Assembly: GCA_002104945.1 (NCBI GenBank)
Contig: MCFH01000021.1
Coordinates: 496,001-560,000, forward strand
Direction: 5' to 3'
Origin: Piromyces finnis finn
Lineage: Eukaryota > Fungi > Neocallimastigomycota
DNA: 64,000 bases
Under the pieces are notes generated by a model. That model saw only the letters and a list, made by a program, of their open reading frames with translations, ran no database searches and was not told where the DNA came from. This document shows positions 5,602 through 62,576 of the stretch, piece after piece (position 1 is the stretch's first letter; each line of letters begins with the position of its first letter). The translations under genes and the position numbers were made by a program.

Positions 5602-6789
5602 TCACCAATTATTATATAAAACCAAAAGAATTGATGCTATTAAAGTCATAAATAAAGAAACTTTAGCATTCATTCTTGCATCATCTTCAATTTCTATAGC
5701 CTTATAAAATTCATTTGTAATAGCTGTATTTTCAACTATATAGAAAGGCTGAGTAAGTGCTGGAAGAATATCACCATCACTATAACATTCAAAATTACCT
5801 TTATTTGATTGAGCATCTTTATCGTCACCATAAATTCTAAGTCTGTATTTAACATTTGATTTTGGACTTTGTCTAAAACCATGATCAGTATCAGTAATAA
5901 CTTCCCAATTATATTGGTATGATCTAGTACGACTAACAATTGGTCCTTCTTCTATTTCTGAAATTGGAATAGTTTTTGAAAATACATGTCTATCCCAAGA
6001 ATTAGTCCATATATTTGGATTGGAATCTTCTTCGTAAAACAATTTTATGGTAATATTACTACTAGGCATATTATGTTTGAATCCATCTAAAAGTTTATTA
6101 TAATACCAAATAACAGTGAAATTGGAATTCATAACAATAATGCTAAATTATGAATTTATAATATTTAATAAAAATGATATAAAAAACATTCATTAATATA
6201 TACTTTAATAATATAATTCATGATTATAATATTTCTTTCATTATTACCTTTTCTTTTGTGGCTTATGGAAGGCAAAGTTTCCTAATGAATTCTTTTCTTC
6301 AACACATTGTTTACCCATATCTACTTCTTCATCTTCATCATTATTATCATCATTAGAATCTTTATTTACAGAAGTTGTATTATTATCATTATTCATATTA
6401 TTATTATTATTGTTATTATTATTATTGTTATTATTGTTATTATTATTATTATTAATATTATTGTTATTAATATTATTGTTGTTATTAATATTATTGTTTA
6501 CTTCAGTATTAGTGTTCATATTGCTATTTTCAGTTGGGTTATTAATACTTGTATTTGCATTAACTTTTTCTTCATTAACATTAGAATTATCTGTAACCAT
6601 TTGAGCTTTTACATTTGGACTCATATTAATATTTGGTTGTTCAATATTATTTTGACTATAAAAATTATTAATATCATCTAATATTGAATTGAAACTGATG
6701 GCCTTTGTAAACTCATTATTTCCATTTTGTCCTCTTGTTAATAATAAGTTTAAAACAATACATAATATAGTAACATAGGTGTATTTCAT
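5602..6789 (-). CDS. Secreted, probably GPI-anchored protein with Asn-rich low-complexity region (exons 6789-6248, 6142-5602)
   Basis: Signal-peptide-like N-terminus MKYTYVTILCIVLNLLLTRG, poly-Asn tract, in-frame GT-AG intron 6247-6143, hydrophobic C-terminus VSLFMTLIASILLVLYNNW. Confidence 0.75.
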
Positions 6790-9700: not shown

Positions 9701-9883
9701 GATATATATCCTAATACTTATGTTTTTTTTCTTTTCTCTATATTTATTAATGATCATATATAATATACATATACTTAATATTAAAGATAATAAATTCACC
9801 GGATAGCTATAACAAATATTATTTTTATAAGTGAAAATTTAATTTTCTCATTAGAAATATTTAAAAATTCATAATATAATAAA

Positions 9884-13687
<3,804 letters not shown>

Positions 13688-24231: not shown

Positions 24232-27200
24232 ATGTTGCATTCGAAAATAAAATTTAAGGATATTTTAAATGACTTTGAAATACGAGATAAAAATACAGAA
24301 GTATTGAGGTATATAAAAATCAAAAATGTGTATATTTAGTATTTAATCATTTATGTAACTATTAAAGAAATATCAATATCTTACAATGTATAAATAAATA
24401 TCTTTTTGTTAGGTATTTAGACGAAAATATAAAAAATTTCTATAAAAACATATTATTAAGGAATGACTCTGAAGAGATTAAAAAAACCGAGGAAAAATAT
24501 AATATTATTGTATCTTTAATGTGTTATGTTCGAAAAAGCGATGTTTCCGGATTGAAGAAATTTATTAAAGAGACTCAAACCGTATCTAATACAACAAACT
24601 ATATTCAATTTAGCATGTATGATTTATTATTAGACGCTATTGGAAACAGTTCATCTTTTGAATTTATTGAATATTGTATTAGTTTATATAATAATCTTAA
24701 TTATTCAATTCATATACATTCTCCACTTTTTGCTGCTCTTAGTCATGATAATATTAACGTTGCAAATAAACTTATTGAAAATGGAGCTCAATTTAATTTA
24801 TATAAAGAAGGTTATCAAAATATTGTTTTTTATCTTTTAAGTCAAAAAAAGCTTAATGCTTCAAGTGTAAAGTTTTTAGTTGAACATGATATAAATATTA
24901 ATACTAATATTTATTCATCTTTAAAAACAGATTTAAAAAGTAAAGAAATTATTAAATATTATGAATGTGATGAATTAGAAAAAATAAAAATTTTCTGCAT
25001 TGATTACATTATATTTCAGATTAATAAATATAAATATAATAAGGAAGAATATATATTATATTTGAACTCACTTCAAATTATTTTCGAATTTGAGTACATA
25101 GATATAGAGACTTTTAATAAAAAATCTATAGAATTAATTGTTGATAATAAATTATATGAAGTATTAAATATATTCATTAAATGTAAAAACTTTTATAAAC
25201 CCGTTTTATACTTATCAATTTGGAATTATGCAGTAAATTTAGATATAATAGATATAAAAGTATTAAATATTTTGTTATCAAATATTGACAGAAATTTTTT
25301 AAATACTATTCAAGGAAAAAAAATTCTGTTTGAAGTTGAAAGTTGTTCAATTAATGAAATAGATAAAATAAATTTGATCAACTTATTAATGGAAAAAGGT
25401 GTAAATATTAATTCAAATTATAATAATAAGTATATATTAATAGAATCAATTAAAAGCAAAAATGACAAGTTAACAAACTTTTTAATTGAGAAAGGAATAA
25501 AAACTAATATTTATGATAAAAGTTCAAATAAAACACCTTTAATGTATTTTATTGAATATAGTAATGATATAAATACATTTGAATTATTATTACAGAAAAA
25601 TATTGATATTAATGAAAAAGACATAAGGAAAAATACACTTCTTCATTATGCATGTAAATATAATAATGTTGATGCATTAGCTTCATTACTGAAAAAAAAA
25701 CCAAAAATAAATGAAAAAAATTTCGATGGACTTACTCCATTAATGATATCAGCTATCAAAGGAAATTGGTTATGTTCTAAATTATTACTAGAACATCCAG
25801 ATATTAATGTTAATATTGCTAATAAAAATAATAAAAACCTTTTGTATTTTATGGTTGAGAATTCAATTGAAGAAAAGGAAATTTATGATGAACTTTTTAA
25901 GCATGGTGCTTATTTTAGTTCTAATTTAATTACTAAAAAAACTTTTTTTGAAAAAATTATTAAAAACAATGAACTTAAACAATCAATAATAAAATATGGT
26001 GTTTTAATTGAAAATGTAGAAAAAAAAATTTTCAAAAAATATAATTCACTTACATTTGCAATAATTTCAAATAAAATAACTTTTTTGAAATCTTTATTAG
26101 AACTTGGCGCTGATCCAAATGAAAAAGATGATGATCAAAATATACCTTTAATTATTGCTATTAAAAACAATAATTTAGAGGCTATTAAACTTTTGATAGA
26201 ATATAATGCTAATTATATTGAAGATGAACAAAAGATTTTACATTGGGCAAGTAATTGTAATAAGGAAATATTATCGTATATTATTGAAATACAAAACAAG
26301 AATAAAGGCAACATTTATTATAATAATAATAGTTCTTATTTAATTTTCAATGCATGTGAAAATGAAAATATTAAAGATTTGAAAAATCTTATTGAAAACC
26401 AAAATGTATCATATAAAATTAATTATAAAAATAGTGATGGATTGACACCTTTATTATATTCCATTCAAAATGGAAAATATGAAAGTGCTGAGTGTATTCT
26501 TGAAGTGTCTAACTATGTTGATGCCAATATCCCTGATTCAAATGGAGATATGCCTTTTGACTTTATTATTAAGAATAAAATTCAAAATATGTTTAATATT
26601 ATTGAAAAGTTAGTAAATCGTGGTGGGTATGTTGATTCAAAATATTTTAATAAATCTTTGATTAATCTTATTATTGATAATAAAGATATAATAAGGTATT
26701 TTATAGAAAAAGGAATTCCAATTAAAAACAATAAAAAAGATAGAATGTTTATTGTTCCAAACTCCTTGATTTTTGCAGTAAAACAAGATTGTTATCCATT
26801 TGTTAAAGCATTATTAGAAAATGGATCATCTGTTGATGAAATTGATAGTGATCATAAAACACCTCTTATATACGCCATTGATAATGACAATAAAGCAATT
26901 ATTGATTTGTTATTAAAATATAAAACTGATATAAACAAGATATATGATAATAATAATGAACTTACTCCTATTATATACACAGTTCAGAAGAATAATTCCC
27001 CATTGTTTAATTATCTTTTTTCAAAAGTTTCAAATGAGTCTGATAAAAAACAAATTATAACATCAATTATTGAATACTCCTTAAATAATAAAAGCCTCGA
27101 AATGATTGATTTCGTCACCAATAACTCAAGCTACGATTTAAATTTAATTAGTAATATTATTAGTTGTTTACTTAAGGAAGGAAAAATAAATTTAAAAAGT

Positions 27201-30200
27201 GAAAATGATAATAATAATACTCTATTACATTATATTTGTTTTAAAGGAAATCAATTTCTTATTAAAGAGTTTATTAATTGCCATCAAGATTTCAATATAT
27301 TAAATTCACTTAATATGACACCCTTAATGCTTTCCATTATTCACAAAAAGTATGATTGCGCTAAATATTTATTAAGTGAATTTTCTTTAATTAATGTTAA
27401 TTACATGGATATATATGGGGAAACAGCAATGACATACTTACTTAAAAATCAAGATTATGATGAAGAAATTATTGAATTATTTTATGATAAAGGTTTATTC
27501 TTTACTATAGAATATTTTAAAAACGATTCGTTATTAAAGTATATTACTAAATGTATTGTTTTACTTAAAATTTTTATTGAAAAGGGTATATATTTTAAAG
27601 ATATGAATGATAATTTAATATTAATTTCAACACCTTTGATTTTCTCTGTTAAAAATAATATAAAAAGTCTATTAATTAGTTTATTAAATTTAAAAGCTAA
27701 TGTCAATGAAATAGATGAAAAAGATAAATCAGCATTATATTATGCAATTAATAATAATGATGTAGATACTATTAATATTTTATTGAATTTTAATGCTAAT
27801 ATAAACCAAGAAATAATGAAAGGAAAAACACCTTTTATTTATACTATTGAAAATAAAAAAATAAATATTTTTATGCATTTGATTCAGAATAAAAATATTC
27901 AAGATAATTTTAATGCTGTTATTAAACACATTTATAATTATGCATATCGAACAAAAAATTATGATATTTTTACTTTTGTTATTAATCAATTAGAAGATAA
28001 ATATGATATTTACTACCCATTAATTGATTTATTAAAAACTGATGGCTATGATATATATGAAGTTAATAAAGAAACTGGATGGAACCTTTTACATTATTCA
28101 AGTTATATTGGGAACTTAAAACTTCTTAACATATTGTTAGATGATTTTAATTTCACTAAGTTAAATATAAAATGTATTGATGGATCCACACCATTAATGC
28201 TTTCTATTAAAAATGGTAAATTTGAATGTGCATCAAAATTAATGGAAAACAAACTTTTAGATGTAAATATTAAAGATAATGATGGTTATTCACCCCTTTC
28301 TTATATGGTAAAACATAATGATATGTTCAATGAGTATATATTTGATAGTTTAATTTTAAGAGGTGCATATCTTCCAGTAAAATATTTTGAGGATACTGAA
28401 TACTTAAAATACATTATTAATAACAAAACACTAATAAAAAAGATTACTTATAAAGGAATTAATGTAATTGATGAAAATTTAGTTACAACATTTATTAGTC
28501 AACCTTTGTTTTATGCTGTTCAAAATAATAATAAACTTTTGGCATTGGAATTTATTAAAAATGGGGCAAAGATTAATGAAATTGATCAAAATAATAATAA
28601 TGCTTTAGTATATGCCATTAAAAATAAGAACTCTGAAATGATACAATTACTTTTATCTCATAATATAAATATAAATTATTCAAAAAAAATTGAAAATTCC
28701 CCATTAATTATTACTATTAAGGAAAATGATATAATTTCTTTTCAAATAATAATTGATTATATAAATAGTGCTTGTAAACATCAACAATTAGATGAAATGA
28801 TAAAAAATATTATTCAGTATTCTAAGAATATAAATGATTTTAATATATTAAAATTTATTCATAAATATTTAAATAGAAAATCATACTCTAATTATGATAA
28901 TCTTAATGATATTATTACTAAAAATGATAAAAATTATAATGTTAAAGCGTGTAAAGATTCACAACCTTTACATTACGGCTGTATGGAAGGAAATATTTTT
29001 GACATTCTTAATATTTATGCTTTCAGAAAAAACGATTTTGATATAAATCAAAGAAATAACGATGGTTCAACCCCAATCATGGTAGCAGTTAAAAATGGAA
29101 ATTATGAATGTATTGAGTTATTATTCAAACTTTATAGCAATCTTGATATAAATATTGCTGATTATAAAAACATGACTCCACTAATGTACATGCTAGAAAA
29201 TAAAGTTGATAAAGTTGATATATATATGATTTTAATAAAAAATGGAGCATATATACCTTTAGAATATATTCAATCTAATTCATATTTTTATATGACATTA
29301 AATTATGATGAGTTTATTAAGTATATTATTAAAAACGGATTTATGGTTAATGACAAAGGTAACATTAAGAATATAACTAACATACTTAAATATTCAATTG
29401 AAGTCCATAATGAAATCTTATTAAAAGTTTTAATAAATAAAGGGATTGAATATAAAAAAGAAAATTGTAATGGAAAACAACCAATATTATATGCTATCGA
29501 ACAAAATAACGAAGAAGCAGTTAGCTTACTTATGAAGCATATGAATAATGAAGAAATTAAAAATTTAGTGAATAACATTATTTTTAATTCTTTTAATACA
29601 AAAAAATGTGATATTTTGATCAAACTAAAAGGAAAGGAATATATTAATGATAGTATTATTAGTAATATTATTGAAGATGCTAGTAAAAACATCAATTATT
29701 ATAAATCTAATGGGTATGAGCCATTACACGAGGCATGCAAAAATAATAATATAAATCTTTTAAACAATTTACTTTTATGTCACTATGATATAAATACAAA
29801 ATCAAAAAAAACAAATGAAACACCAATTATAGTTGCTTTAAAAAACAGAAAGTATGATATAGTTAATAAATTATTAGAATATGATAACATTAACATAAAT
29901 TATTGTGATAATAATCAACAATCACCAATATTTATTATGATTAATGATAAGCAATCAGAAAATACAAAAATCTTTGAGAAGTTGATAACTCATAATGTTA
30001 ATACCCTCGAAAAATATAAAGGTGATACTCCTTTACTTCTTTCAATTAAAAAAAAGAAAAATGAATATGTAAGAATCCTTCTTCAATATCAAACTACTGA
30101 TATTAATGAACTCTTTAGTAAAAATATGACTTTAATGAATTACATGATTGATAATATAATTGATAATGAATATGCATTTGATTTATTACTAAAAAGGGGT

Positions 30201-31946
30201 GCATATATTGATTCTAAGTACATTAACGATAATAAATTAATTAAATTGTTTGAAAAAAATAAAGGATTAATCAAAGCAGTTATTAATAATGGTTTTATCA
30301 TTAAAAATAAAACTAGTACCGTAAAAATTAATTATCCTTTAATTCATTTAATTAAAGGAAGTAAAAATAATCTTGTTGAAAATTTTTTAAAATATGGTGC
30401 TTCCGTAGAAGAAACTGATGAAGATGGTTTTACTCCAATTTTTCATACTGTTAGAAGTAACAATTCAAAAATATTCTTTTTGTTATTGGATAAATATAAT
30501 GCAGACATTAATAAAACGACTAAAAATGGACAAACACTATTAAACTATGCTAAAAAGAAGAAAATTCAACTTTTTATTACCGAATTGAATAATAGAAAAA
30601 CTAAAAATTCTTCAAATATTAATACAGTTAATGATTTTAATGAAAGCATTAAAAATATTATCAAATTGGATTCTTATTTACCTTTGGACAATAAGACAAA
30701 TAAAAAATCAAAAGTTTCAACTAGTAAAGAAAATGAACAAGGTAAAGTAAAGGTTAATAATGATTTAAAAACCAAGAAAACATCAGTAAAAAAAAATAAT
30801 AAAACCAATAATAAAAATAAACAGAAAATTAGTAATAAATTAGTAATAGAAAAGCCACAAACTAAAAGTCATAATATTGAAAATATATATGATATAAGTA
30901 GTTATCTTAATTTTGGAAAAATGATTAACATTAAAGATAATACAAAAGAAAGCAAATCATTAATATTATTGGAAGAAGAATCCAATGAGGAAGAGTTAAA
31001 TTTCTCAAGTGATTTGAGTAGTAATGAAGACTATTTATCTGATTTTATTTATGAAGAATGTATGAGTGTTAATAATAATAATAGTGATTTATTTGGTGAT
31101 GAAGATGATGAAGATGATAATAATGATGAAAATGATTTCATGTATTATATAAACAATATAAATGATAATAATAGTAGTAATAGTGATACTGAAAAAATTC
31201 AATATAATGATTATAATGAAGCATATGAAGATAATATTATTAATAAGTATCCAGAGTTACATTACGCATGCTTAAAAGAGAGTGAAGAATTTATAAATAT
31301 GCTTATCAATAATTTTATGTACGATATTAATGAACCATGTAATGATGGATCTACTCCTCTTTTACTTTCTGTAAAACATAAAAAATATAATAGTATTAGA
31401 ATTTTATTAAAAAATAAAGCAAATATTAAAAAACAAGATAATCAAGGAGAATCACCAATATCATTTATATTAAAAAACCCATCAAAAGATAATTTAAAAA
31501 TCCTTAAGCTCTTTATTCCATATATAAAAATAAAAGAAACTTATCCACCTAATAATTTAACACCATTAAATTATTTGATAAGATACAATAATATTGAAGG
31601 TATAAAGGTTCTTTTAGAGTCTAATAAATCAATTATTAATGAAATAGATAACAATGGAGATACTATATTACTAAGTACTCTTAAAAACAACATTAGTAAT
31701 AAAGAATTAATTGAAACATTATTATTATTAGGTGCCAATCCCGACCAATTAGATACTAAAGGAAAAACACCATTAATTTATGCTATAGAAAAAAGAGACT
31801 ATGATTTAATTAGATTACTAATTAAGTATAACGCAAATATTGAATTAAAGATTTCAAGTGGAATAACTCCATTAAAATTAGCAATAAAATGTAATGATAT
31901 TACAATTGCAAAAGAACTTTTGAATTCAAAGAGAAAAATGAAATAA
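24232..31946 (+). CDS. Giant ankyrin-repeat protein (about 2530 aa). Exon 1 24232-24308, exon 2 24413-31946
   Basis: Dozens of TPL...A...LL..GA.(V/I)N motifs in a 7.5-kb open exon. A short upstream exon joins in frame via a phase-2 GT-AG intron. Confidence 0.92.
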
Positions 31947-40939: not shown

Positions 40940-41977
40940 ATGGATATAAGGTTTGTAAATAAAAATATCCAAATAAAAATATATATTAATATGTAATATA
41001 TATATATAATATTTTTTACTAATTAGATAATTTATTATAATATTAATATTGATTTTAGAGATATAATTATACATGAAATCATAAATCTAAATTCGTTGGA
41101 TAATGTAAAATCCAACCTTCCGGAATTAGAGAAATTATATAAAAATCTATATAATGATATTAGTATTATTGATGATTGTGCATTAAATGATGTTCCATAT
41201 GATGTGATTGATTTTTTATTAAGTAAACATAAAGGAAATATTAAGAAATACAACAAAAATATTAAATCGTTAGGGTCCATTCTTATTAATAATAAATTTG
41301 ATATATTTAAATTATATTTAAAATATGGTTTTGATATAAATGGAAAAATCATTATTAATAATGCACCACTTCCGCTGAATTTGTTTTTATTTTTAATAAT
41401 ATATAATGAAGTAACAGAAGAAAGGGTTAAATTTTTAATAAATAATGGAATTAATATACAAGAAAAAAAAACAGATTGTTATGTTAATGAATATAATGAT
41501 TATGATGATTATGATGATTATGATGATTATGATGATTATGATGATTATGATGATTATGATGATGAAATGGAAAATTTTACAATTTTAGATATTATAATAA
41601 TGAAAATTATTGATTGTAAAAATGAAGAAAAAATATTATATTCTAATATATTAAAGTATGTTTTCAATTATTATTCAAGAATAAATGTCGACTCTATTAT
41701 TTCATTAATTTTTTTAGGAAAGCAAAAAAAACATATTTCAAAAAAATACATGAAACATATTGTTGAAAAAAATATAAAGTTTATTGATATAAATTTAATT
41801 CACACCAATATCATTGATAAGATTGTTGATTCAAGTTCAATAAACATTGTTAAGTTAATAATATCGTATGTTGGTATTAAAAATTTTAATAATTCTTTTT
41901 TTTTTTTAAATTTGAAAATGGCAGCTAGTTTTTATAATAATCATGACTTTTTACATTTAATAGATCAATCATTTTTA

Positions 41978-42017
<40 letters not shown>

Positions 42018-45000
42018 GTAGTTCAAAAAATAAAAAGACAAATCATACGATATTTAAAAGAATAATGGAAAAGAATTTGCAAAGTGTTAAAAATATTCTT
42101 GAAAATGAAAGAAATGTTGTAGATATAAGAAACACTGAAAATAGAACACCCTTAATGTGTGCTATCCAATATTGTATAAAAAAACCTGAAATAATTAAAC
42201 AAATAATGAGATATCAACCAAATAAAAACCTTATTGATAATAATAAATTTTCTGCACTTCATTTGGCTTGTTTGTATAATAATTTTGAAATTATTCCAAA
42301 GATAATTACCGAAGAAAATGTCAATATAAAAAATATTGATGGTAATACACCTCTGATGATTGCAATAAAAAAAAATCATTATAATTGTGTTAATAAATTA
42401 TTAGAATGCGATATTTATATCAACGTTAATATACCTGATAATAAAAATGATACACCTCTTTTATATTTATTAAAAAATAATATAAATGAAGAAACTCTTT
42501 ACAGGTTATTGATTAAAAAGCTGGCATATATAGAATTTAATTTACTTAGAGATGAATTTTTGGTAAAAATAATAAATAATAGATCATTTTTACGTTCCAT
42601 TAAGAATGAAGGTTTTTATATATTAAAAAGTAATGAAACTGTTTTTATTGAATCGCCACTAAGTTTTTCAATTCAAGAAAATATTCTTTCATTAGCGGAA
42701 GCACTAGTTCAAGAAAATCCTGTATTAGAAGAAATAAATCTCATTAAACCTTGCATTTTCTATGCAATTGAAAGTGATAACGAAGAATATATCAAATTAT
42801 TACTAGATAATCAGAAAGAAGTTTTTTATATTGGAAGTCATGAACTAACTCCAATAGAATATGCGATTCATTTAAATAAGCCAAATTACACAAGATTAAT
42901 AATAAATAGATATATTGAAGAATTTGAAAAAGATTGTAATATTAAAAAAAAATTAAAAAATATAGTAGATACAAATCTACAAAAAATTTTTAATAAATTA
43001 AAAAATAAAACCGAGAATATTAATTATTCCCATCTAAGATATATTGAGAATTACGAAGTATTATGTTATAATGAAATGAAAAAGACCATTTTAGATGTTT
43101 ACAATCAACATAAGATTAAGAAAAATAATGTAATGGATATTAATAATGAAGAAATAATAAAATCAAATGAACCAAAAAAGGAAAACAGTAATAGTAAGGA
43201 AAGTTACACAATAGATAACATTAAAAATATTGATGAATATACAGTTTTATTAACAGCTTGTATAACTGGAAATGATATCATTATATCATTATTGATTAAT
43301 TCGAAAATCTATGATCTAAATAAAAAAATTACTGAATATGAATTAACTCCATTAATGCTTCTTATTTGTCATGATCATTATGGTTGTGTTAATATGTTAA
43401 TAGAGAATAATGTAGATGTAAATATTAAAGATATTTATGGAAATACACCTTTCATTTATATGTTAAAATACTCGAAAAAGAATAAAGATATTTATAATGC
43501 ATTAGTGAATGCTGGTGCTTTTATTGACTATATCTTATTTAATGATGAAAATTTTATTAATAATATAATATTGAATGACTATTTTATAGAATTATATATA
43601 AACAAAAAAATTAGAGTTAAATATGATAATGATTCAGTCGCTGATATAATTTCTACACCATTAATATTCGCGATTAAACTAAATCATGTAGGATTTATTA
43701 AAACATTACTTAATAATAATATTAAAGTTGATGAAATAGATGATGAAAAAAATGATCCATTAATAGTAGCATCTAAAATAAATAATTCAGAAATAATTGA
43801 ATTATTAAATGAATATTTCAAAAAATTCAATTTTGGTTCAGAACAAGTATCTACGGAAGTCAAAAATGATATAAATAACGATTCAGTTAATAATTCTAAA
43901 ATTTCTGAAATAGATTTAAAAGAAGATGAAATAAGAAAATTATATAAGGAAGATTATAATATTGATTTTAAATGTAATGAAAATGATGACAATTGTTATA
44001 CAGAATTTTATCTTGCATCATTAAATGGTAATACATTGATGATTAATACGTTGTTTGAAAGTAATAAACAATGTGATATGTTTGATGCTAATAAACAATC
44101 TAGTAAATATAAATTTACACCATTAATGATGTTAATTGTAAAAGGAGATTATGAAAATGCAAAGCTATTCCTCGAAAATCATGCTGACCCAAATGTTAGA
44201 GATATTTATAATAATACACCATTAATGTATATGTTAAAATATTCTAAATATAATGTGGATATATATAATTTATTAATTGAAAATGGTGCCTATATTGATT
44301 ATAAATTGTTTCTTAATAGTAATTTCGTTTATTCAATTATAAAAAACTTTTTATTTATAAGACATTTGATCAATAAAAAAATAAGGATTAACTATGAAGA
44401 TGATAATGAAATTAAACTGGTAACAAAGCCATTGATCTTCTCAATTGAAACTAATTATTCAAAATTTGTAGAAGAAATATTGAAAAACAATGTAAATATT
44501 AATGAAGAGAATGAAAATAATGAGTTAGATTTTGTATTAAATAAAACAAAAAACAAAAAAATAAAGAAATTACTAAAAAGATATGGTTACAACGTTCATC
44601 CATTAAACGAAGGTTTTGTTGAAGATACAACTTTAAATAAAAATAAAAATTATAATGAAATATCAAATAAAGATTTCACACTGAATAAAGAAAAAACAAT
44701 TATGAACAATAAATCAGATAAAATTGAAGAAGATAAAAATAAAATTATGGATATTGAAAATACAAACAGTATTGAAAATGCAAATAGTATTGAAAATACA
44801 AATAGTATTGAAAATGCAAATAGTATTGAAAATACAAATAGTATTGAAAATACAAATAGTATTGAAAATGCAAATAGTATTGAAAATACAAATAGTATTG
44901 AAAATGCAAATAGTATTGAAAATACAAATAGTATTGAAAATGCAAATAGTATTGAAAATACAAATAGTATTGAAAATGAAAATAGTATTGAAAATACAAA

Positions 45001-48000
45001 TAGTATTGAAAAAAATGAAATAAATAAAAATTGCTACAATATTGATTTTAATATTGAAAATGAAAATAAATACGAATATCCAGAATTACATTTGGCATGT
45101 TTATATAATGAAAATAATGACAGTACACTAATGTTAAATGCATTATTAGAAAATGGAAGCTTTGATATTAATGAACAAGATAAGAAATACAAATTTACAC
45201 CATTAATGTTATCAATTGTAAAAGAAAATTATAAAAATGCAAAGATATTATTGAATCATAAAGCAAATGTTAATATAAAAGATATAAATAATAATACCCC
45301 ATTTATATATATGTTAAAATATTCAAAAATAAATGAAGAGATATTCGATATGTTAATAGAAAATGGTGCATATATTGATTATAATTTATTAACTTTTGGA
45401 AAATTTAAAAAAAAAATAGCTGAAAATCAATTGTTTATTACTAATTTAATTAACAAGAAAATAAGATATAAATATAAAAATAATAGAAAAATTTATTCAA
45501 TAAACAAGCCGTTTTTATTTTCTATCCAAACTAAAAATTATAGATTAGCTGAAGAATTATTAAAAAAGAATATTAATATAGAAGAAGAAAATAAAAACGA
45601 TGAAATAAATAATGAAATAAAAAATGACAATAATAATGGAAAAATAAAAAAATTATTAATAAAATATGGCATAATAAGGAATGATGATAATAACTCTAAT
45701 GAAATAGTAATAAAAGAATCTACAACAAATAAGGAATCGGTGAATAATAGAAAGAATGAAGAAGTAATTACTAATGATGAAACAGAAAATATTGGAAAGT
45801 GTGAAAGTAATGAAGAAGTAATAACTAATAATGAAACAGAAAATATTGGAAAGTGTGAAAGTAATGAAGAAGTAATAACTAATAATGAAGAAGAAAATAT
45901 TGGAAAGAATGAAAGTAATGAAGACGCAATGACTAATAATGAAGCAGAAAATATTGGAAAATGTGAAAGTAATGAAGAAGTAATTACTAATGATGAAGCA
46001 GAAAATATTGAAAAGAGTGAAAGTAATGAAGACGTAATAACTAATAATGAAACAGAAAATATTGGAAAGTGTGAAAGTAATGAAGAAGTAATAACTAATA
46101 ATGAAGAAGAAAATATTGGAAAGAGTGAAAGTAATGAAGAAGTGATGACTAATGATGAAACAGAAAATATTGGAAAGTGTGAAAGTAATGAAGAAGTAAT
46201 AACTAATAATGAAGAAGAAAATATTGGAAAGAGTGAAAGTAATGAAGACGTAATAACTAATAATGAAGAAGAAAATATTGGAAAGAGTGAAAGTAATGAA
46301 GAAGGGATGACTAATAATGAAACAGAAAATATTGGAAAGAGTGAAAGTAATGAAGAAGTGATGACTAATAATGAAACAGAAAATATTGAAAAGAGTGAAA
46401 GTAATGAAGACGTAATAACTAATAATGAAACAGAAAATATTGGAAAGAGTGAAAGTAATGAAGAAGTAATAACTAATAATGAAACAGAAAATATTGAAAA
46501 GAGTGAAAGCAATGAAGACGTAATAACTAATAATGAAACAGAAAATATTGGAAAGTGTGAAAGTAATGAAGAAGTAATAACTAATAATGAAGAAGAAAAT
46601 ATTGGAAAGAGTGAAAGTAATGAAGAAGTGATGACTAATGATGAAACAGAAAATATTGGAAAGTGTGAAAGTAATGAAGAAGTAATAACTAATAATGAAG
46701 AAGAAAATATTGGAAAGAGTGAAAGTAATGAAGAAGTAATAACTAATAATGAAGAAGAAAATATTGGAAAGAGTGAAAGTAATGAAGAAGGGATGACTAA
46801 TAATGAAACAGAAAATATTGGAAAGAGTGAAAGTAATGAAGAAGTGATGACTAATAATGAAACAGAAAATATTGAAAAGAGTGAAAGTAATGAAGACGTA
46901 ATAACTAATAATGAAACAGAAAATATTGGAAAGAGTGAAAGTAATGAAGAAGTAATAACTAATAATGAAACAGAAAATATTGGAAAGAGTGAAAGTAATG
47001 AAGACGTAATTACTAATGATGAAACAGAAAATATTGGAAAGAGTGAAAGTAATGAAGAGGTAATTACTAATGATGAAGCAGAAAATATTGGAAAGAGTGA
47101 AAGTAATGAAGACATAATAACTAATAATGAAACAGAAAATATTGAAAAGAGTGAAAGTAATGAAGAAATAATTACTAATGATGAAACAGAAAATATTGAA
47201 AAGAGTGAAAGTAATGAAGAGGTAATTACTAATGATGAAGCAGAAAATATTGGAAAGAGTGAAAGTAATGAAGACATAATAACTAATAATGAAACAGAAA
47301 ATATTGGAAAGAGTGAAAGTAATGAAGAAGTAATAACTAATAATGAAACAGAAAATATTGGAAAATGTGAAAGTAATGAAGAAGTAATAACTAATAATGA
47401 AACAGAAAATATTGGAAAGAGTGAAAGTAATGAAGAGGTAATTACTAATGATGAAGCAGAAAATATTGGAAAGTGTGAAAGTAATGAAGAAGTAATTACT
47501 AATGATGAAACAGAAAATATTGGAAAGAGTGAAAGTAATGAAGAAGTAATTACTAATGATGAAACAGAAAATATTGGAAAATGTGAAAGTAATGAAGAAG
47601 TAATACCTAATAATGAAACAGAAAATATTGGAAAGAGTGAAAGTAATGAAGACGTAATTACTAATGATGAAACAGAAAATATTGAAAAGAGTGAAAGTAA
47701 TGAAGAAGTAATTACTAATGATGAAACAGAAAATATTGAAAAGAGTGAAAGTAATGAAGAAGTAATTACTAATGATGAAACAGAAAATATTGGAAAATGT
47801 GAAAGTAATGAAGAAGTAATAACTAATAATGAAACAGAAAATATTGGAAAATGTGAAAGTAATGAAGAAGTAATAACTAATAATGAAACAGAAAATATTG
47901 GAAAGAGTGAAAGTAATGAAGAAGTAATAACTAATAATGAAACAGAAAACATTGGAAAGAGTGAAAGTAATGAAGAAGTAATTACTAATGATGAAACAGA

Positions 48001-50941
48001 AAATATTGGAAAGAGTGAAAGTAATGAAGAAGTAATACCTAATAATGAAACAGAAAATATTGAAAAGAGTGAAAGTAATGAAGAGGTAATTACTAATGAT
48101 GAAGCAGAAAATATTGAAAAGTGTGAAAGTAATGAAGAAGCAAATATTAATAATGAAACAGAAAATATTGGAAATGAAAAAATAAATATTAATAATATAA
48201 AAATTATAAATGTTGAAAATAAAAATAGGGTTGAAGATTGTTTAATAAACAATGTTAATGAAAATGATAGTAATGATAAAAATAACACATATATAATTAG
48301 AAATGATAATAAAAACAATGCTGATACCAATTTTGAAAATTATAATATTGAAGAATTAATTGATGAAAGTAATAATGAAACTCCTGAACTTCATTTATCT
48401 TGTAATGGTAGCAGAACTGAAATGATACAATTATTATTGAATAATGGTTTTGATATTAATGAACAAGCCGGAAAATATAATCTAACACCATTAATGATGC
48501 TTATTATAAAGGAAGATTATGATAATGCTATTCTTTTTATAAAGCATAATGCGGATGTCAATATTAAAGATATATATAATAATACACCATTTATATATAT
48601 GTTAAAAAATTTAAAAATCAATAAAAATATATATGATTTATTAATAAATCATAATGCAATTGTGGATATTATTCATTTCAACAATAAAAAATTTATTGAA
48701 CAGATCTTACGAAATCAAACTTTCATTAAGCTATTAATCAAAAAGAAAATAAAAATAAGTGATGAAAATGGAATAATTAAATCAATAAGACAGCCATTAA
48801 TATTTGCAATAAAAAGAAATAATATAGAATTTGTAAAGGTGTTAATTGAAAATGGCGCAGAAATTAATGAATTCTCATACAATGGTAATACACCATTAAT
48901 TCAAGCAATAAATAATAACAATGAAGAAATAATTAAATTATTAATTGATAAAGGTGTTGATTTAAAGCAATGTAATAATGAAGGAAAATTACCATCAACT
49001 GTTGCTAAAGAAAGAAATAATAAAAAAGTTATATCAATAATTGAAAATGCATTAAAACAAAATAATACAGTCAGTAATAATGTTTATTCAAGTAATAATT
49101 ACAGCACAACTGATAACAATAAAATCTTTTATAATAGTAATAACAACAACGATAATAATAATATTGATATATATAATAATAATATCAATGCATTTAATAA
49201 CAATTATAGTATTAATGTATATAATAATAGTAGTACCAACTTATTTAATAATAATAACATCAATGTATATAATAATACCAACTTATTTAATAATAGTAAC
49301 ATCAATGTATATAATAACACCAACTTATTTAATAATAGTAACATCAATGTATATAATAACACCAACTTATTTAATAATAGTAACATCAATGTATATAATA
49401 ATAATAATAATATCACTGTATTTAATAATAATAATCTTTATAATAATATCTCATTAAATAATAATAATAATAATGCATATTTATATAATAATAATAATAA
49501 TTCAGGATTAACAAATATAAATGATTACAATATTAACCTAAATCATAAAAAAATATATAATCAGTTATTAAAATTCATTAGAAAAGGACTTGTTAGAGAA
49601 ATTATTAATCTAATTCGAAATGGTGCAAATGTTAATTATGAGTATAAAAATGGTTTAACTCCATTATTATATGCAATTCATAATAAAAATTTAAAAATAA
49701 TTGATTTATTAATATCATATGGAGCTAATGTTGATATGATCAATAAAAATAATTTAACGCCAATAAAATTATCTTTAAATAGTGGAAATATTGAAATAAT
49801 AAAAACTCTTGTAAACCAAAGTTCTAAATTTAATGAAAGTAATAAACATTATAAATCACTCATAGAAGCAATAAACAAGGAAAATGTGTTAGCCGTAAAA
49901 ACTATAATAAATAATAATACACTTGAGCCACACAACATGCTAAAAAAAGTTAAAAAAATTTATTCGAATTTCCATATATCAAATATAGCATTATTTAGAA
50001 CAATTAATAAGAAGCATATTAGTTCCAAACAAAAATATAATGAAATAAAAACTCAAGATAACATTAACAGCATAAAGAAAGAGGAAAATTCTAACTTAAA
50101 TAGAGATAATGAAAATAATATTAATAAAAATTATAATGAACTTATTGAAGAAAATATAAATATTTTTAAATGTATTGATGAAAAAAAATATGATTTAGCC
50201 AAAAAAATAATTTCTTCAAACATGAAAGAAAATATCAATATTAAAAATAAAAAAGGATCCACTGTTTTGACTTATATAATAGTAAGACCAGAAAAGTTTA
50301 ATAATAATCTCTTTGATTTTTTAATTAATAATAATGCTTATATCAACAGAAACATTTTCAATACTGGTGTTAAAACTCTCAATTCCCCCAAATTTATTTC
50401 AAGCTTCTTAAATAAAAAATTAAAAATAAAGTTAAAGGAGAATGATAAGCTAAAATCAATAACTGAGCCACTTTTATATTTAATTGAAAGTAAAAGTTAT
50501 AAATATTTAAACATCATTCTTAATATACTTAAAAATGAGAAAAAAAAAGTCTTAAATCAAAATTTAATTGAAAAAGCCATAGAAATGAATGACTCTGAAG
50601 CTTTAAATACCCTTTTAAAACATATTAATCCCAGAATGAAAAATAGAAAAGGAAAGACTTTATTAATGCATGCAGCTAAATATTGTGACAAAAGTATACT
50701 AAAAATTTTATTAAATAATAGAATAGATATAGATGAAAATGATAAAAATGGTGAAACAGCAATATTCTATGCTGCCAAAAATAATAATTTTAATAATGTA
50801 AAATATTTAGTAAAAAAAGGTGCAAATTTAAAAATAATGAATAATGACGGTAAAAACATTTTAACCTATTGTAATGAATTAAATAAGACAATCATATCTG
50901 AATATTTAACTAAAAAAATAGATAAATTATATAAAAAATAG
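40940..50941 (+). CDS. Giant ankyrin-repeat protein (about 3300 aa) with internal tandem repeats. Exon 1 40940-40950 (ATG GAT ATA AG), exon 2 41059-50941
   Basis: The 9.9-kb open exon has many ankyrin motifs. The ORF-track start at 41096 is TTG; an 11-nt ATG exon joins in frame via a phase-2 intron 40951-41058. Confidence 0.9.
41498..41563 (+). repeat. Coding 9-bp tandem repeat (GATTATGAT)n encoding (DYD)n, about 7 units
   Basis: Direct inspection. Confidence 0.9.
44753..45010 (+). repeat. Coding 18-bp tandem repeat, about 14 units, IEN(T/A)NS
   Basis: Direct inspection. Confidence 0.95.
45755..48172 (+). repeat. Coding 54-bp minisatellite, 44 full units plus 1 partial, consensus NEEVITNNETENIGKSES
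   Basis: Unit starts fall exactly 54 bp apart (45755, 46025, 46511, 48131 checked). Confidence 0.97.
49235..49402 (+). repeat. Coding 42-bp tandem repeat, about 4 units, TNLFNNSNINVYNN
   Basis: Direct inspection. Confidence 0.9.
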
Positions 50942-56370: not shown

Positions 56371-57214
56371 TTATTCAGCCTTGTTGTATAATTGTTCAGC
56401 ATTCTTAACAGCCTTGTTAATACCACTATCGATAGCACTTTCATTTTTGAGAAGGTATACTCTAATATATTTATTGTAAATAACTTCAGCACCCTATTAT
56501 TTATTAATAATATATATAAATAATTATTAATTTTTCATTTAATATAAAAAATATTAAAAAATAAAACATTTTCTATATATATCACTAAAATTTATATATA
56601 ATATTTACTCTGAATTGTGGAAGAGATAACCATAAAGTGAAAATACTCTTAAGGAAGTAGTAGAAGGAAACCCAACCAAGAATTTGGTCAGAGAAACATT
56701 CGACTAAGTGAAGGAAACCGAAAACAGTCCAGTAAGTTAACCACTAATTATATAAAAAATACATAATATATATAATTAATTCTTTGTTTCCTATATTTTT
56801 ATTCTTTGAATTATATTCGCCATCAGATTATTATAATATATAGTATTGAAATATTTACTTGGGTATCATCATTCTTATCAGAACTTTCAATAGCCTTGAA
56901 GGAAGCATAAGCTGGGTAAATAAAGGCAATCTTTTAAAAATATTATTTGTTTTTATTTTATTTAAATTTTATTAATAAATATTATTTTCATTATATACAA
57001 TATTATAACTTATTTTTATTGTAATACATACTAAAGTAGATAATAAGTCACCAAAGATATTGAAGAAAATGAAAACTGAAATTACAGCAGCGAAACCAAT
57101 AGTAATATAGGTCTTTAATTTTGGAACCTTTGACTTTTCATCAATGACATTTAAGTATGGAACCTTCTTTAATTCCTTATCGAGTTGATCAATATAGTAA
57201 TTAACCTTATCCAT
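56371..57214 (-). CDS. YOP1: ER-shaping protein Yop1/REEP5 (TB2/DP1/HVA22 family), 4 exons
   Basis: Spliced IAFIYPAYASFKAIESSDKNDDTQ/WLTYWTVFGFLHLVECFSD...YYFLKSIFTLWLSLPQFR/GAEVIY. Confidence 0.95.
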
Positions 57215-58597
57215 TTCTGATATTTTTATATTTTTTTTATTTAATATTGTTTTTTTATTTTTTATTTATTAATTAATTATTTAATTAATAAAATAGTTTT
57301 ACTTTTTGTTTTGCTAATTTTAGTTTTTAAAAAAAAATTAATGCTATTATTATTGAATATAATAACTTTTTAATTATTGAATATATAAAAAAAAATTATT
57401 TCATAAACCTTTTATACTTTTACAAAATGATATATTAGTTTATAATCTAGTATATTGTATCAATGTATCATAATTATTTATTTATAAATAATTATTTTTA
57501 AAATAAAGAATATTAATTAAGAATTTCTTCCAATGAGATTAAAGATTTTTTTTTAAAAAAATTAAATTTATTATATAATTAAATATAATTATCCATATAT
57601 TATTGCTATAATTAAATAAAGTGTTATAATAACATAACTGATCAATAATAAAGTATCAATTAAAATCATTATATTAATAATATATGTTTAATATATAATA
57701 AAAAAATAAAATTTAAGAAAACTATAAATTTTTTTTTAAATTCTATATATATTAAATTTTATATTACATTCTACTCATTATATATATTAATAAAAAATAT
57801 AATGAAAAAGTATTTCTGGTAAAAAAAAAAGATTTATATAGTATTTTTCTGGTAAAAATTTTAAAAAAAAATTAATATAAATTTTCCTTATTAAGATTTA
57901 TTAAAGATTTATTGACATATTAAAAAGTTTTTTTTTTATTTAAATACAAGAGATTAAAAGAAAAAATAGTTAAAAAAAATAATAATATTTTCATTATTTT
58001 ATTATTTTTACAAAACTATAATACTATTATAAAACGTAATTATATATGATATTATTTTTTAAACTTAAGAATAAAAGTTTTTTATATATCCCAAATCTAA
58101 TATAAATCATTAATTATATATATATATAATTTCAGATAATTTTAACTTTTTAGTTTTTATTTTATTTGAATATACGACGAATCATTTTTATTTTTGATAT
58201 GGATAAATATATAAATATATATAAAGTTGAAAAAAAAGCATTTTATAGTAATCTTTGATTTATGGGGGATATAAAATATACTAACTCTATTTATATTTCA
58301 TTAATTTGCCAATATTATCATAATTATAAATTTATAAGCTCTAATAATCTATAATTAAATTATTAAAGGTTATAATTGTAAATCAAAGGGAAAAAAATCT
58401 ACTATAATCTAATTTAATAAAAACAATTAAAATGAAATTTTATAAATAATACAAATTAAAAATATTACAAACTATAATAATAAATTAATAAAAATTTAAT
58501 AATATAATTGAACTTAATCTTATTTCATTAATTATTGAAATAATTAAAAATCAGCAAATATTTATAATACAATTATATTCCTAAGCATCAACATATT

Positions 58598-59287
58598 ATG
58601 GCAATACTAAAAAATGAGAAAAATAAACCACATATTATTATTAGTGCAATTGGCCATACCAATCATGGTAAGACAGCTTTGACAGCAGCTATCACAAAAG
58701 TATTAAAATTTTTAGGTAATGCTGAATATAGAACGTACGATCAATTAAACAGAGAAAGAGGAATTGAAAATTTTATTGTTCCCATTGAATATGAAACAGA
58801 TACTAGAAAATATTCACATATTGACTATCGAGATCATTCTGAATTCATGAATAATTTAATCAAAGGCACTCTTCAAATAGACGGAGCAATATTGGTAGTA
58901 TCAGCTACTGATGGTGTAATGCCTCAAACAACAGAAATTATAACATTAGCTCGTAAAATTGGAATATTGCATTTGGCTGTATTCCTGAATAAGTGTGACT
59001 TGTCTGATGATGAAGAGTTATTAGAATTAGTAGAAATGGAAATAAGAGAATTATTGTCATTTAATGGTTATGATGGTGATAATATACCAATAGTAAAAGG
59101 TTCAGCTTTAGATATTTTAGAATCAAATTCCACAAATGTTAATGCCCCAGTGTATGGTCCAATTATTGAGCTAATGAAAAATGTTGAAAAATATATCCCA
59201 ACCCCACAAAGATCATTTGAATATGAGTATACCGAAGAAAGAGTAGGTGAATTATTAAATGGTATACGAAAAATTAATTTGAATTAA
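58598..59287 (+). CDS. Bacterial-type EF-Tu G domain only (domains II and III absent), intronless, divergent GTPase motifs
   Basis: KPHIIISAIGHTNHGKTALTAAIT, YETDTRKYSHID, DGAILVVSATDGVMPQT, FLNKCD, EELLELVEMEIRELLS, IPIVKGSAL, YIPTPQR, then about 24 unrelated residues and a stop. Confidence 0.9.
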   Translation: MAILKNEKNKPHIIISAIGHTNHGKTALTAAITKVLKFLGNAEYRTYDQLNRERGIENFIVPIEYETDTRKYSHIDYRDHSEFMNNLIKGTLQIDGAILVVSATDGVMPQTTEIITLARKIGILHLAVFLNKCDLSDDEELLELVEMEIRELLSFNGYDGDNIPIVKGSALDILESNSTNVNAPVYGPIIELMKNVEKYIPTPQRSFEYEYTEERVGELLNGIRKINLN

Positions 59288-60818
59288 GAAAATTTTTAAT
59301 ATAGTCAATCCAATCCACTCATCATTGTGTAATTTAAAGAGTTTGTATTACTAGTAAAAACAGAAAGCATATTTAATATTAATAATAATAAGTCTAATTA
59401 ATCAAATCTACTAATATTCGCAATAGAAAAATATAATACATAATAAAGGATAACGAATATGATAAAACTATTTAAATAACAAAAACTTAAAAGAAGAAAG
59501 ATATTGTGAAATTCAAAAAGGAATCTAAAAACTGATTAATATTTTATATTAAATGTATTTTTAAATTATAAATATACAAGTGTAAAATAAGAAAAGACTA
59601 TCTAAAGCTTTAATTTTATTTTTTTAAAATAAAATTTTTTTATTTATAATTAATATTATAATATTTTGTTATTTTTTTTTCAAAAAGCTATTTAATATAT
59701 ATTTAATATATAAAATAATTGAATTTTTTTCATTTTTTTTCATAGAAATATTAAATTTATATTGGATAAATTTTGAAAAATAAGAAACTATATTAATTTA
59801 AATTTAATAAAAAACGGCATTTTTTTCTTTTGATTAACAAATTGGAAAATGGGGTACATTATTTGATAAGGAAATTAATCCATCCATTAATATTTGTATT
59901 ATAATACATTTACATTATTGGTTGGAAGTTTTAAAATAAATATTATATGTACATTATTAATGTATTAAAAACTGTATATATTGATATTTTTAAAGTAAAA
60001 CATTTTTAATTTTTAATGGAAATTTTAGGGATTAATTCATATTAAAGTTTAATTATTAACAGAAAAAAAAAGAAGCCATTTATGGACTATTTGTGTTTCA
60101 TTAATTTAAATACATAAAAAAAAAAGAATATTAATAATATATACCTATATATTAGTATTAATAAATAATGATTTAATAATAATAAAATAAAATATAAAAG
60201 TTTATAAAGGATTTTAAAGAAAATTTTTAATATTTATACAATATATATTTTAAAATATATATAAAAAAAAAACTTTATAAAAAATTAACAGAAAAAACCA
60301 CTTTCGTAAACTTTCGTAATTACCAATAAATTTATTTGTTTTATTTTTTAATTAATATCAGAACTTTAATAATATAATTTAGGAACTAGGAATTTAATTA
60401 AATATTAAAAAATACTACCACAATTTTGTGTTACATTATTTAATTATTTGTCATTCATTTTTAAACTATAAGAAAAATATATATATATCTCTTCAATATT
60501 CTTTTTTTTTAAAAATGTAAATAAAATTCATTTTCATAAAAAAAAAAAAAAGAAATGAAAAAAGAATTGTAATAATACAAAGGGGTTATTAAGTAAGTAT
60601 TAATTATAAACATTATTATATACAACGATAATAAATTATATTTAAAATAAAAATAATTAACATTATTACAATAAAATCTAAATTCCAAACTAAAATTTCT
60701 TTTTTTTTTATTTGCATTTATATAGAAAATATATTTCTTTTTTTAATTTTTATATCTAATTTATATTTAAAATAATAATAAATAAAGTGATATTTAAAAT
60801 ATAAATAATCAAAGTATC

Positions 60819-62576
60819 ATGTTATCAAAGAAAAATTTTCAATTTATTTTTACTTCATTATTTTTATATTCTCTCAATAGAACTTTTGTTCTTTCAAGAA
60901 ACATTGATATTTTGAAAAGAAATTATAGTATTACCAACAATATAGATACACCAAAAGATAGAAAACCTATTGGTTTTGGTCGTAATACGGTCGGTGGTGA
61001 TGTAGAAGAAAGTACTATCTATAATATTTATAATTTAGAAGAATTTTTTAAAGCTCTTGATAACCAAGGTCACCCAGACGATCCAAAAATTATTTATGTC
61101 AATGGTAAAATCCAAGGAAATATTAAAAAAATAATAACTAATAAAAAAAGAAGTATTTCAACTGACTTTGAAAACGAGGAGAGTGATGATTTAATTGAAT
61201 CTATCGATGAAAGTATTGATGTAGAAGCTTTTATTGAAGATAGTGATTTTGAAGAAGAAATTCAATATATGACTGAATCAGATTATGCTCCAGGTTATTC
61301 TATTTCAGATTATTTATCTTGTTTTGGTGAAGACGGTAAGGTCTGGGAAAATTCTGACGAATGTAATCATTTAGAGGAATTAAGACTTCAAGGTCATATC
61401 AATCAAAGAGATGCTATTATGTTAAGAATTGGTAACAATACTTCAATTTATGGCGTTGATGAAAATAGTCGTCTTCAAGATATTTTCTTAAATATCAAAG
61501 GATCAGATCAAGTCATTGTTCGTCACTTAACTGTCGATACTCCAAGAGACTTCTTTTCAGAATGGGATCCAACAGATGGTATTAATGGTAGTTGGAATGC
61601 AGCTTTTACCGGTATTGCTATTGAAAATTCGTAAGAAGAATGAAAAGAAAAAAAAAATTTTTTTTTTATATAATAATATAATAATTTTATAATTACGAAA
61701 TTATCAATGAATAATAATAATTAACAACTATTTGATTATTTCATTATTAATAAATATTATCATAATATATTTATACATTTATAATATTTATGTATCTTAT
61801 AAATATTTAATAGAACAAATGTTTGGATTGATAATTGCCATATTACTGATGGTGAACATTCAATTGTTGAAGCTGGTAAAAAATTTGGTACATATATTGA
61901 ATTACATGACGGTGCTTTAGATATTTGGCGTGGCGCTGATTACATTACAATTTCTAATTGTCGTTTTAGTGATCATCAAAAAACTATGTTAATTGGTAGT
62001 AGTGATAGTATGAAAACTGATGCAGGTAAATTCCACATTACTCTTTATAACAATGTTTTTGAAAATTGTAAGGAGAGACTTCCAAGAGTCCGTTTTGGTA
62101 AAGTTCATATATTTAATAATTACTATTATTCTACTACCGATAGTAGCAATGGATATAATTCTCTTTCAGCTGGATATTATAATGATCCAAAAGTTTTTGC
62201 AAACTATTTCATTGGCTTAGGGGTTGAATGTGATATTACATCCCAATATAATTATTTCCTTTACGAGGGAACAGAAGATATTCCAGATTCAGAAACTATT
62301 GTTGTTTATAGTTATGGTGGTTACACCTTTTCTGATGTTGGATCCTTGTATAATGGTCATACTTTCGATCCAGAAGCTATTGCTAACGAAAGTTTTGAAA
62401 TTAAAAAAGCTTCTAGAATTGAAAGTGATGCTCTTAAAGGAAAAAATCCACCTGCTTGGACTAATGCCACTTTTAATAATAAATCATTTAATCCATCAGA
62501 GTATTATGACTATGAAGTCATCGAAGATATGAATGTTATTTTATCTCTTGTTAAAAGAACCATTCCAGAATTTTAA
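60819..62576 (+). CDS. Pectate lyase, family PL1, secreted. Exons 60819-61630 and 61814-62576
   Basis: IGFGRNTVGG, GNNTSIYG, QVIVRHL, WDPTDG...WNA, NVWIDNC, HDGALDI, HQKTMLIGSSD, RLPRVRFGKVHIFNNYY. No dockerin or CBM seen. Confidence 0.92.

Follow-up and report, generated by a model that had tools for sequence, protein, structure and literature searches.

The genome of the anaerobic gut fungus Piromyces finnis encodes, in a normal chromosomal setting, an isolated G domain of the elongation factor EF-Tu, whose closest relatives are found in Clostridia and whose switch regions have changed far more than the remainder of the protein. A bacterial (Clostridia) origin of this open reading frame (ORF) of 229 amino acids is, in our judgement, highly probable. 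We lean, though only modestly, towards the reading that a Clostridia-type tuf fragment was acquired by horizontal gene transfer and was retained as a nucleotide-binding, non-switching module resembling pseudo-GTPases.

An intronless gene for a stand-alone G domain

The ORF is located on the plus strand at positions 58598..59287 of the window, that is, the whole stretch of 64,000 nucleotides that was analysed from contig MCFH01000021.1 (820,238 bp; assembly GCA_002104945.1). The corresponding record, MCFH00000000, is that of P. finnis Pirfi3, a horse isolate (PMC6712302). The gene call is a single exon of 229 aa, running from an ATG to a TAA without internal stop, and the earlier note was thus right to describe the frame as intact and intronless. 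Stop codons amount to 9.6% in DNA resembling the flanks, so that 229 open codons would arise by chance with a probability of about 8e-11; the ORF is therefore not a chance product.

Homology to EF-Tu domain I covers residues 1-209 (58598..59224, plus strand) and is seen with Pfam and NCBIfam models as well as by tblastn and blastn against tuf genes of Clostridia. It starts exactly at the ATG and ends at about residue 209-216. The sole Pfam domain is PF00009 (GTP_EFTU), which spans residues 10-201 (E 3.4e-38) with a score of 131.6 bits, well above the gathering threshold of 26.5. The NCBIfam EF-Tu models align solely at model positions 2-209 of 394, and the equivalog TIGR00485 reaches 237.4 bits, below the curated cutoff of 522.4 for EF-Tu membership. 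Sequence matches in the PDB are likewise to EF-Tu domain I (1e-65 to 1e-50). The Met-Ala start is aligned with that of bacterial EF-Tu and is not preceded by a presequence; a start at the bacterial position had already been noticed, and the homology from Met1 confirms it.

The ORF is flanked by two called genes with introns, which place it in a fungal locus. Upstream lies a YOP1/TB2_DP1_HVA22 gene (56371..57214, minus strand) and downstream a pectate lyase (PL1) gene (60819..62576, plus strand), of which Piromyces sp. E2 (74%) and Orpsp1_1 (70%) have orthologues. Elsewhere in the window, two very long open frames of 2475 and 3281 aa are present on the plus strand (24519-31946 and 41096-50941; GC about 0.21), the second of which contains only an annotated product of 121 aa. 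They could correspond to giant repetitive proteins or to low-complexity frames.

Absence of domains II and III

When the whole window was compared with full-length Clostridia EF-Tu by tblastn, only 58598-59230 was matched, and of the three-domain architecture of EF-Tu (GTP_EFTU, GTP_EFTU_D2 and GTP_EFTU_D3) PF00009 alone is present. Nothing significant was detected downstream for domains II and III, whether displaced by an intron or by a frameshift, by tblastn with E values up to 10, nor with a profile HMM of both domains applied to the six frames of the downstream 1.5 kb (stops being read as X and 59539-59576 left out). The claim that the ORF ends at the boundary between domains I and II is thus borne out. 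Upstream of the ORF, no remnant of EF-G (fusA) was found as a trace of a str operon.

Past the end of the homology, the protein continues with a C-terminal tail of 20 aa (59225..59284, plus strand) that is predicted with low confidence. The earlier note considered this tail to be novel. The tail itself is indeed there, but its novelty is less clear, as it bears a weak likeness to the domain II motif AGDNIGxLLRGIQR. The best alignment of the domain II/III HMM falls on the ORF's own tail, at a non-significant E value of 0.27, and alignment of the tail to AGDNIGxLLRGIQRxEI of domain II (MAFFT and Smith-Waterman) gives a z of 2.2 and a shuffle P of 0.033. In view of this weak resemblance, which is only a hint, the tail, instead of being newly acquired, may be a vestige of domain II that persisted when about 60 aa were deleted in frame and a stop then arose.

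Nucleotide-holding motifs and switch regions

In the alignment of the protein with its closest EF-Tu relatives, the motif set for guanine nucleotide binding (G1 GxxxxGK[ST], G4 NKxD and G5 SAx) is complete. The G1 motif or P-loop reads GHTNHGKT (residues 19-26, 58652..58675, plus strand, as for all the elements below) and preserves GxxxxGKT despite V to T and D to N changes, while G4 NKCD (residues 131-134, 58988..58999) and G5 SAL (residues 169-171, 59102..59110) are intact. Helix D, ELLELVEMEIRELL (residues 140-153, 59015..59056), is identical to that of Clostridia EF-Tu at 14 of 14 positions, with synonymous differences at the nucleotide level.

The switch regions are altered. Switch I (residues 41-62, 58718..58783) has undergone a deletion of 5 aa (KAPEE), and its Mg-coordinating Thr is replaced by Glu (RGITI to RGIEN); its AF2 pLDDT is below 50. 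In the segment formed by G3 and switch II (residues 76-95, 58823..58882), where DCPGH has become DYRDH, just 7 of the 20 residues that are invariant in bacteria are kept; the Asp of G3 is preserved and the Gly of DxxG is replaced by Asp. All these readings of G1, the shortened switch I, DYRDH, NKCD and SAL agree with those of the earlier note. An intact G2 (the switch I Thr) together with an intact G3 (DxxG), taken as the mark of a member of the EF-Tu family, is not found in this protein, which has RGIEN with the 5-aa deletion and DYRDH instead.

The AF2 model (pTM 0.75) has a core with pLDDT of about 90 at residues 100-200 and low confidence for switch I (residues 44-61) and the tail (207-229). 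Foldseek aligns it to EF-Tu domain I with a TM score of 0.72-0.78. The elements that remain, GxxxxGKT, the G3 Asp, NKCD and SAL, are those that a G domain requires for holding guanine nucleotide and Mg. The universal loaded-spring switch of P-loop GTPases senses the gamma-phosphate through two residues, the Thr of switch I and the Gly of G3. Both sensor residues are lost in the 229-aa protein.

Origin of the fungal gene

The best relatives among 5.8 billion proteins are EF-Tu of Clostridia, with 55-60% identity (Acetivibrio thermocellus, Acutalibacter and Clostridia metagenome-assembled genomes (MAGs)). A search with one genome per species placed Acetivibrio straminisolvens first (58%), followed by MAGs of Oscillospiraceae and Ruminococcaceae. 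At the DNA level, blastn aligns 636 nt with tuf of a Clostridia MAG at 67.5% identity, again from the ATG onwards. In a maximum likelihood (ML) tree of domain I (90 rows; IQ-TREE, LG+C20 PMSF), the protein falls within a clade of seven together with the Acetivibrio group (support 98/94). Its terminal branch is 2.24 long, about 12 times the median of 0.18, which fits a strongly relaxed constraint. A phage or plasmid source of the stand-alone domain was considered and rejected, the matches being only ordinary tuf genes below 60% identity. Amelioration was discarded as a clock because the GC4 of an AT-rich Clostridia donor is already 0.165, against 0.139 in the ORF, and because dS is saturated.

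The same likelihood framework lends some weight to a quite different origin, in which the ORF would descend from the mitochondrial EF-Tu (TUF1/TUFM) of the fungus itself and would have remained as a relic after the loss of the hydrogenosome genome, with no bacterial transfer involved. When the protein was constrained to group with the four mitochondrial/eukaryotic EF-Tu rows, none of which is a fungal mitochondrial EF-Tu, the tree was 8.4 lnL better than the one obtained without constraint (AU p 0.60). Exhaustive placement of the protein on a reference tree of 46 taxa gave an ELW of 0.50 to the Acetivibrio group, 0.34 to the mitochondrial clade and 0.17 to positions elsewhere, and at sites diagnostic of Acetivibrio or mitochondrial EF-Tu the protein matches 9 and 7, respectively. 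The phylogenetic check proposed earlier against mitochondrial TUFM therefore has a mixed outcome, well supported grouping with the Acetivibrio group in the ML tree on the one hand, and a mitochondrial grouping that neither the AU test nor the placement scan rejects on the other. However, the mitochondrial rows, like the fungal protein, have long branches and are themselves misplaced in the tree, away from Alphaproteobacteria, and the 229-aa protein fails the composition test. Where it agrees with mitochondrial EF-Tu, the changes run from A to S/T and from V to I, as expected under AT pressure. This suggests that the mitochondrial signal in the likelihood tests is due to long-branch and compositional attraction. 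Overall identity also differs, with 0.58 to the Acetivibrio group versus 0.48 to mitochondrial EF-Tu (46-50%).

Discrete characters, which are beyond the reach of long-branch attraction, favour Clostridia. The insert SNSTNVNAPVY (59123..59155, plus strand) has the length and motif common to EF-Tu of the Oscillospiraceae/Acetivibrio type, LESNSTN-VNAPVYGPIIELM in the fungal protein being equivalent to LESTSTD-VNAPEYAPILELM, whereas EF-Tu of the alphaproteobacterial/mitochondrial type has xEIGxxSVLKLL here and is shorter by 3 residues. The likeness of STNVNAPVY to Ruminococcus-type EF-Tu that had been pointed out from the sequence alone is in line with this Clostridia-type insert. The protein further has RERG, where alphaproteobacterial and mitochondrial EF-Tu have KARG, the VLxFxG signature and the bacterial position of the start Met. 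Neither a presequence nor the set of alphaproteobacterial/mitochondrial signatures, by which a mitochondrial EF-Tu would be recognized, is present. Taken with these characters, the identity values, the ML tree and the nucleotide match to tuf argue for the transfer from a gut bacterium that the earlier note proposed, although the likelihood tests do not prove it; we consider descent from the mitochondrial gene to be improbable.

Contamination of the P. finnis assembly by bacterial DNA, or a chimera created during assembly, would also place an EF-Tu gene in this contig, and EF-Tu genes are plentiful in any contaminating bacterial DNA. Yet even among 5.8 billion proteins no bacterial EF-Tu exceeds the 55-60% range, fungal genes are found on both sides of the ORF in the 820-kb contig, and the composition of the ORF is that of its host. 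Its GC content is 0.30, with GC1/2/3 of.42/.30/.17, as in neighbouring exons, while the flanks have a GC of 0.12-0.14. The amino-acid composition has moved towards residues with AT-rich codons, the fraction of FYMINK residues being 0.34 in the protein versus 0.25-0.26 in donor-like EF-Tu. In addition, 67-90% of the sampled words from the ORF and its 200-nt flanks are present in four runs (of uncertain type) from three studies of the same organism. A chimeric assembly, which the earlier note had named as fatal to its interpretation, is thus argued against by the neighbours, by the GC content and by the runs, and contamination or chimerism is very unlikely. Physical integration and recipient-like composition, as expected of a transferred gene, are both observed.

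Selection or decay

The Clostridia-type fragment may have been preserved by selection or may be decaying. In simulations of neutral drift under the HKY model, donor-like tuf DNA evolved towards the intergenic base composition of the window. Among the simulated sequences, 210 codons stayed free of stops in 1.75% of cases at 75% amino-acid identity, in at most 0.5% at 65% and in 0 of 400 at 58%. In comparison with its EF-Tu relatives, the protein has a single indel, which is in frame. Its changes are unevenly distributed. Of the 130 columns that are constant among the 29 nearest bacterial EF-Tu, 31 fall in switch I and II, where the protein preserves 12/31 residues, versus 78/99 elsewhere (Fisher 8e-5). 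This difference in retention, 0.40, was reached in none of 300 neutral replicates, for which it was 0.00 +/- 0.10. Pairwise dN to the donors is 0.30-0.33, compared with 0.10-0.155 among bacteria, and dS is saturated. The pattern indicates that purifying selection probably acted on the fold and the nucleotide-holding elements over the greater part of the divergence, with release or remodelling of the switch regions. The retention advanced by the earlier note accordingly receives support of an indirect kind, from the integrity of the ORF and from the non-uniform change as compared with the neutral simulations.

This constraint is historical, and the integrity of the ORF is no proof of a present function. 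The gene could be a non-functional, decaying relic of the transferred tuf fragment, kept open by luck or by a recent loss of constraint, as would suit a singleton with no detected orthologue, a very long branch, a disordered tail and the loss of key catalytic and switch residues, many of the substitutions (A to S/T, V to I, D to N) following AT mutation pressure. Against this, freedom from stops has a probability of at most 0.5-2% under neutrality of the whole branch and there are zero frameshifts, the strongly non-uniform change was not reproduced by neutral simulations, the composition is coding-like and sharply unlike that of the flanks, and domains II and III have left no trace while domain I is still 58% identical. 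Neutral decay along the whole branch is therefore unlikely, and a relic of any of these kinds seems to us rather doubtful, albeit far from negligible.

Distribution in gut fungi and metagenomes

We found no protein above 60% identity among 5.8 billion proteins. A search with the remodelled regions retrieved, as sharers of words, only 38 ordinary EF-Tu at 45-51%, an exhaustive search of 50% representatives reached a top identity of 57% without any orthologue, JGI metagenomes contain no such locus, and a scan of genome contigs with patterns unique to the query gave no match. Neither a paralogue nor an orthologue of the 229-aa protein was thus retrieved in the whole-protein, remodelled-region, JGI metagenome and 50%-representative searches. 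Other gut-fungal proteomes are in the collection, as indicated by the PL1 control (Piromyces sp. E2 and Orpsp1_1). One protein of 217 aa (P0302) was examined as an orthologue candidate and dismissed, because it comes from a bacterial tuf that belongs to a str operon and carries a frameshift. On contig_5968 of ENA ERZ25039603, a bacterial str operon (3879-7205 of the stretch L092) has both fusA and tuf split into two called genes, which is probably due to frameshift errors of this long-read metagenome assembly. Splits of this kind give rise to spurious G-domain-only EF-Tu proteins in databases.

The corresponding locus of Piromyces sp. E2 (KZ150766.1) is syntenic, as seen from the genes PL1, WD40 and UQ_con and from a block of 299 nt at 76%, and the interval in which the EF-Tu-like gene would be expected, between this block and PL1, is a 2.3-kb run of N. 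Runs of N of kilobase length occur at 3685-6073, 7539-9816 and 10947-12581 of the E2 stretch (L093), among others, so that genes of the AT-rich intervals, such as orthologues of the EF-Tu-like gene and of YOP1, cannot be scored as absent there. The 299-nt block, which was used as an anchor for the synteny, is AT-rich, occupies 57394-57685 upstream of the YOP1-like gene and is 76% identical to 6182-6472 of L093 (E 2e-45). A conserved non-coding element, for instance a promoter or a 5'UTR, may be present here. A further match to the PL1 gene (60819-62576), at 76%, lies on a contig from JGI metagenomes (L094). The E2 annotation takes the ORF of the first PL1 exon (271 aa) for the complete protein, probably as a result of an assembly gap.

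Discussion

Our favoured reading can be put as a sequence of events. A Clostridia-type tuf fragment, nearest to that of Acetivibrio/Oscillospiraceae, would have moved into the P. finnis lineage and settled in a normal region of a fungal chromosome, where domain I alone would have survived as an open reading frame and acquired a host-like composition. Selection would then have preserved the core of the G domain and the elements that hold guanine nucleotide, namely the P-loop, the G3 Asp, NKCD and SAL, while the switch regions that couple GTP to conformational change would have been released or remodelled (Thr to Glu, the 5-aa deletion and G3 Gly to Asp). The resulting protein is predicted to fold as a stand-alone G domain able to bind GDP or GTP, and would neither sense the gamma-phosphate nor switch. 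It would also be unable to work on the ribosome or to bind aminoacyl-tRNA, the latter because domain II is absent.

The nearest working analogue is the engineered G domain of Escherichia coli EF-Tu (Parmeggiani et al. 1987, PNAS 84:3141, listed among the references of PMC9601768), which likewise consists of domain I alone, with about 200 residues. The isolated domain is reportedly soluble and binds GDP and GTP; it has wild-type switch regions and is said to hydrolyse GTP, without responding to aa-tRNA or EF-Ts. In contrast, the fungal protein lacks the Thr of switch I and the Gly of G3 and has an additional tail of 20 aa. A Glu at the position of the switch I Thr is found in the phosphomimetic T61E mutant of E. 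coli EF-Tu (PDB 5mi9), which retains GDP binding and is trapped in an inactive open state with any nucleotide, nucleotide binding being uncoupled from the conformational cycle (PMC5851678). T61E is a point mutant of the full-length factor, whereas in P. finnis the Glu is accompanied by the 5-aa deletion, by the loss of the G3 Gly and by that of domains II and III. Considering together the loss of both sensors, the behaviour of T61E and the nucleotide binding reported for the isolated G domain, binding without switching is to be expected, and by analogy we infer that the fungal protein would carry out neither GTP hydrolysis nor nucleotide-dependent switching.

With Clostridia EF-Tu (TIGR00485; A. 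thermocellus, A. straminisolvens and Oscillospiraceae), the protein has in common residues 1-209 at 55-60% identity, the start, the insert, G1, G4, G5 and helix D. It differs from them in its lack of domains II and III (237 bits against a cutoff of 522), in its shortened switch I with Thr to Glu and G3 Gly to Asp, in its location on a eukaryotic chromosome and in a branch 12 times the median. Its likeness to mitochondrial EF-Tu (TUFM/TUF1) is limited to the fold of domain I at 46-50% identity; unlike the latter it has no presequence, a long Clostridia-type insert and RERG rather than KARG. By the criterion of a preserved G-domain fold in which one or more catalytic or switch motifs are missing, the protein would count among the pseudoGTPases. 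Like members of this class such as the septin pseudoGTPases (PMC10731463), it has kept its fold while its catalytic and switch motifs have degenerated, and it differs from them in its probable derivation from a translation factor of bacteria.

Many metabolic and carbohydrate-active genes are well documented as having reached anaerobic gut fungi by horizontal transfer; for core translation genes, transfer and persistence are regarded as rare. The gene resembles the xenologues described in Neocallimastigomycota (bioRxiv 10.1101/487215; PMC11291939) in its recipient lineage, in its gut-bacterial type of donor, in being intronless and in its position among fungal genes, and departs from them in that its source is an informational gene of which only a fragment is present. 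The more recent study, PMC11291939, surveyed 44 genomes, P. finnis included, and reports domain loss after transfer for other gut-fungal xenologues. No elongation factor or GTPase xenologue is mentioned in the main texts of bioRxiv 10.1101/487215 and PMC11291939 or in the supplements of the latter, as far as these were available to us. Gut-fungal xenologues and pseudo-GTPases are thus both known kinds; what is unusual here is that the source is a core translation factor and that only a single-domain fragment is involved.

It appears that a fragment of a translation factor has survived here as an open ORF in which the fold is preserved and the switch machinery has been specifically degraded. 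This case also illustrates that a bacterial and a mitochondrial origin can be hard to tell apart when long branches and compositional effects intervene. If the gene is not expressed, it would show that annotation can be misled by long intact ORFs of transferred fragments. If it is expressed, it would represent a natural experiment on what the G domain of EF-Tu can do alone, and an instance of the birth of a pseudo-GTPase from a translation factor. It is tempting, if speculative, to go one step further and to imagine a domesticated Clostridia EF-Tu G domain, devoid of its tRNA-binding domains and with its switch deliberately put out of action, that is expressed and has taken on a new, non-translational role, acting as a scaffold or binding module to which nucleotide is constitutively bound. 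Should this be true, horizontal transfer of EF-Tu would have given rise in P. finnis to a natural pseudo-GTPase.
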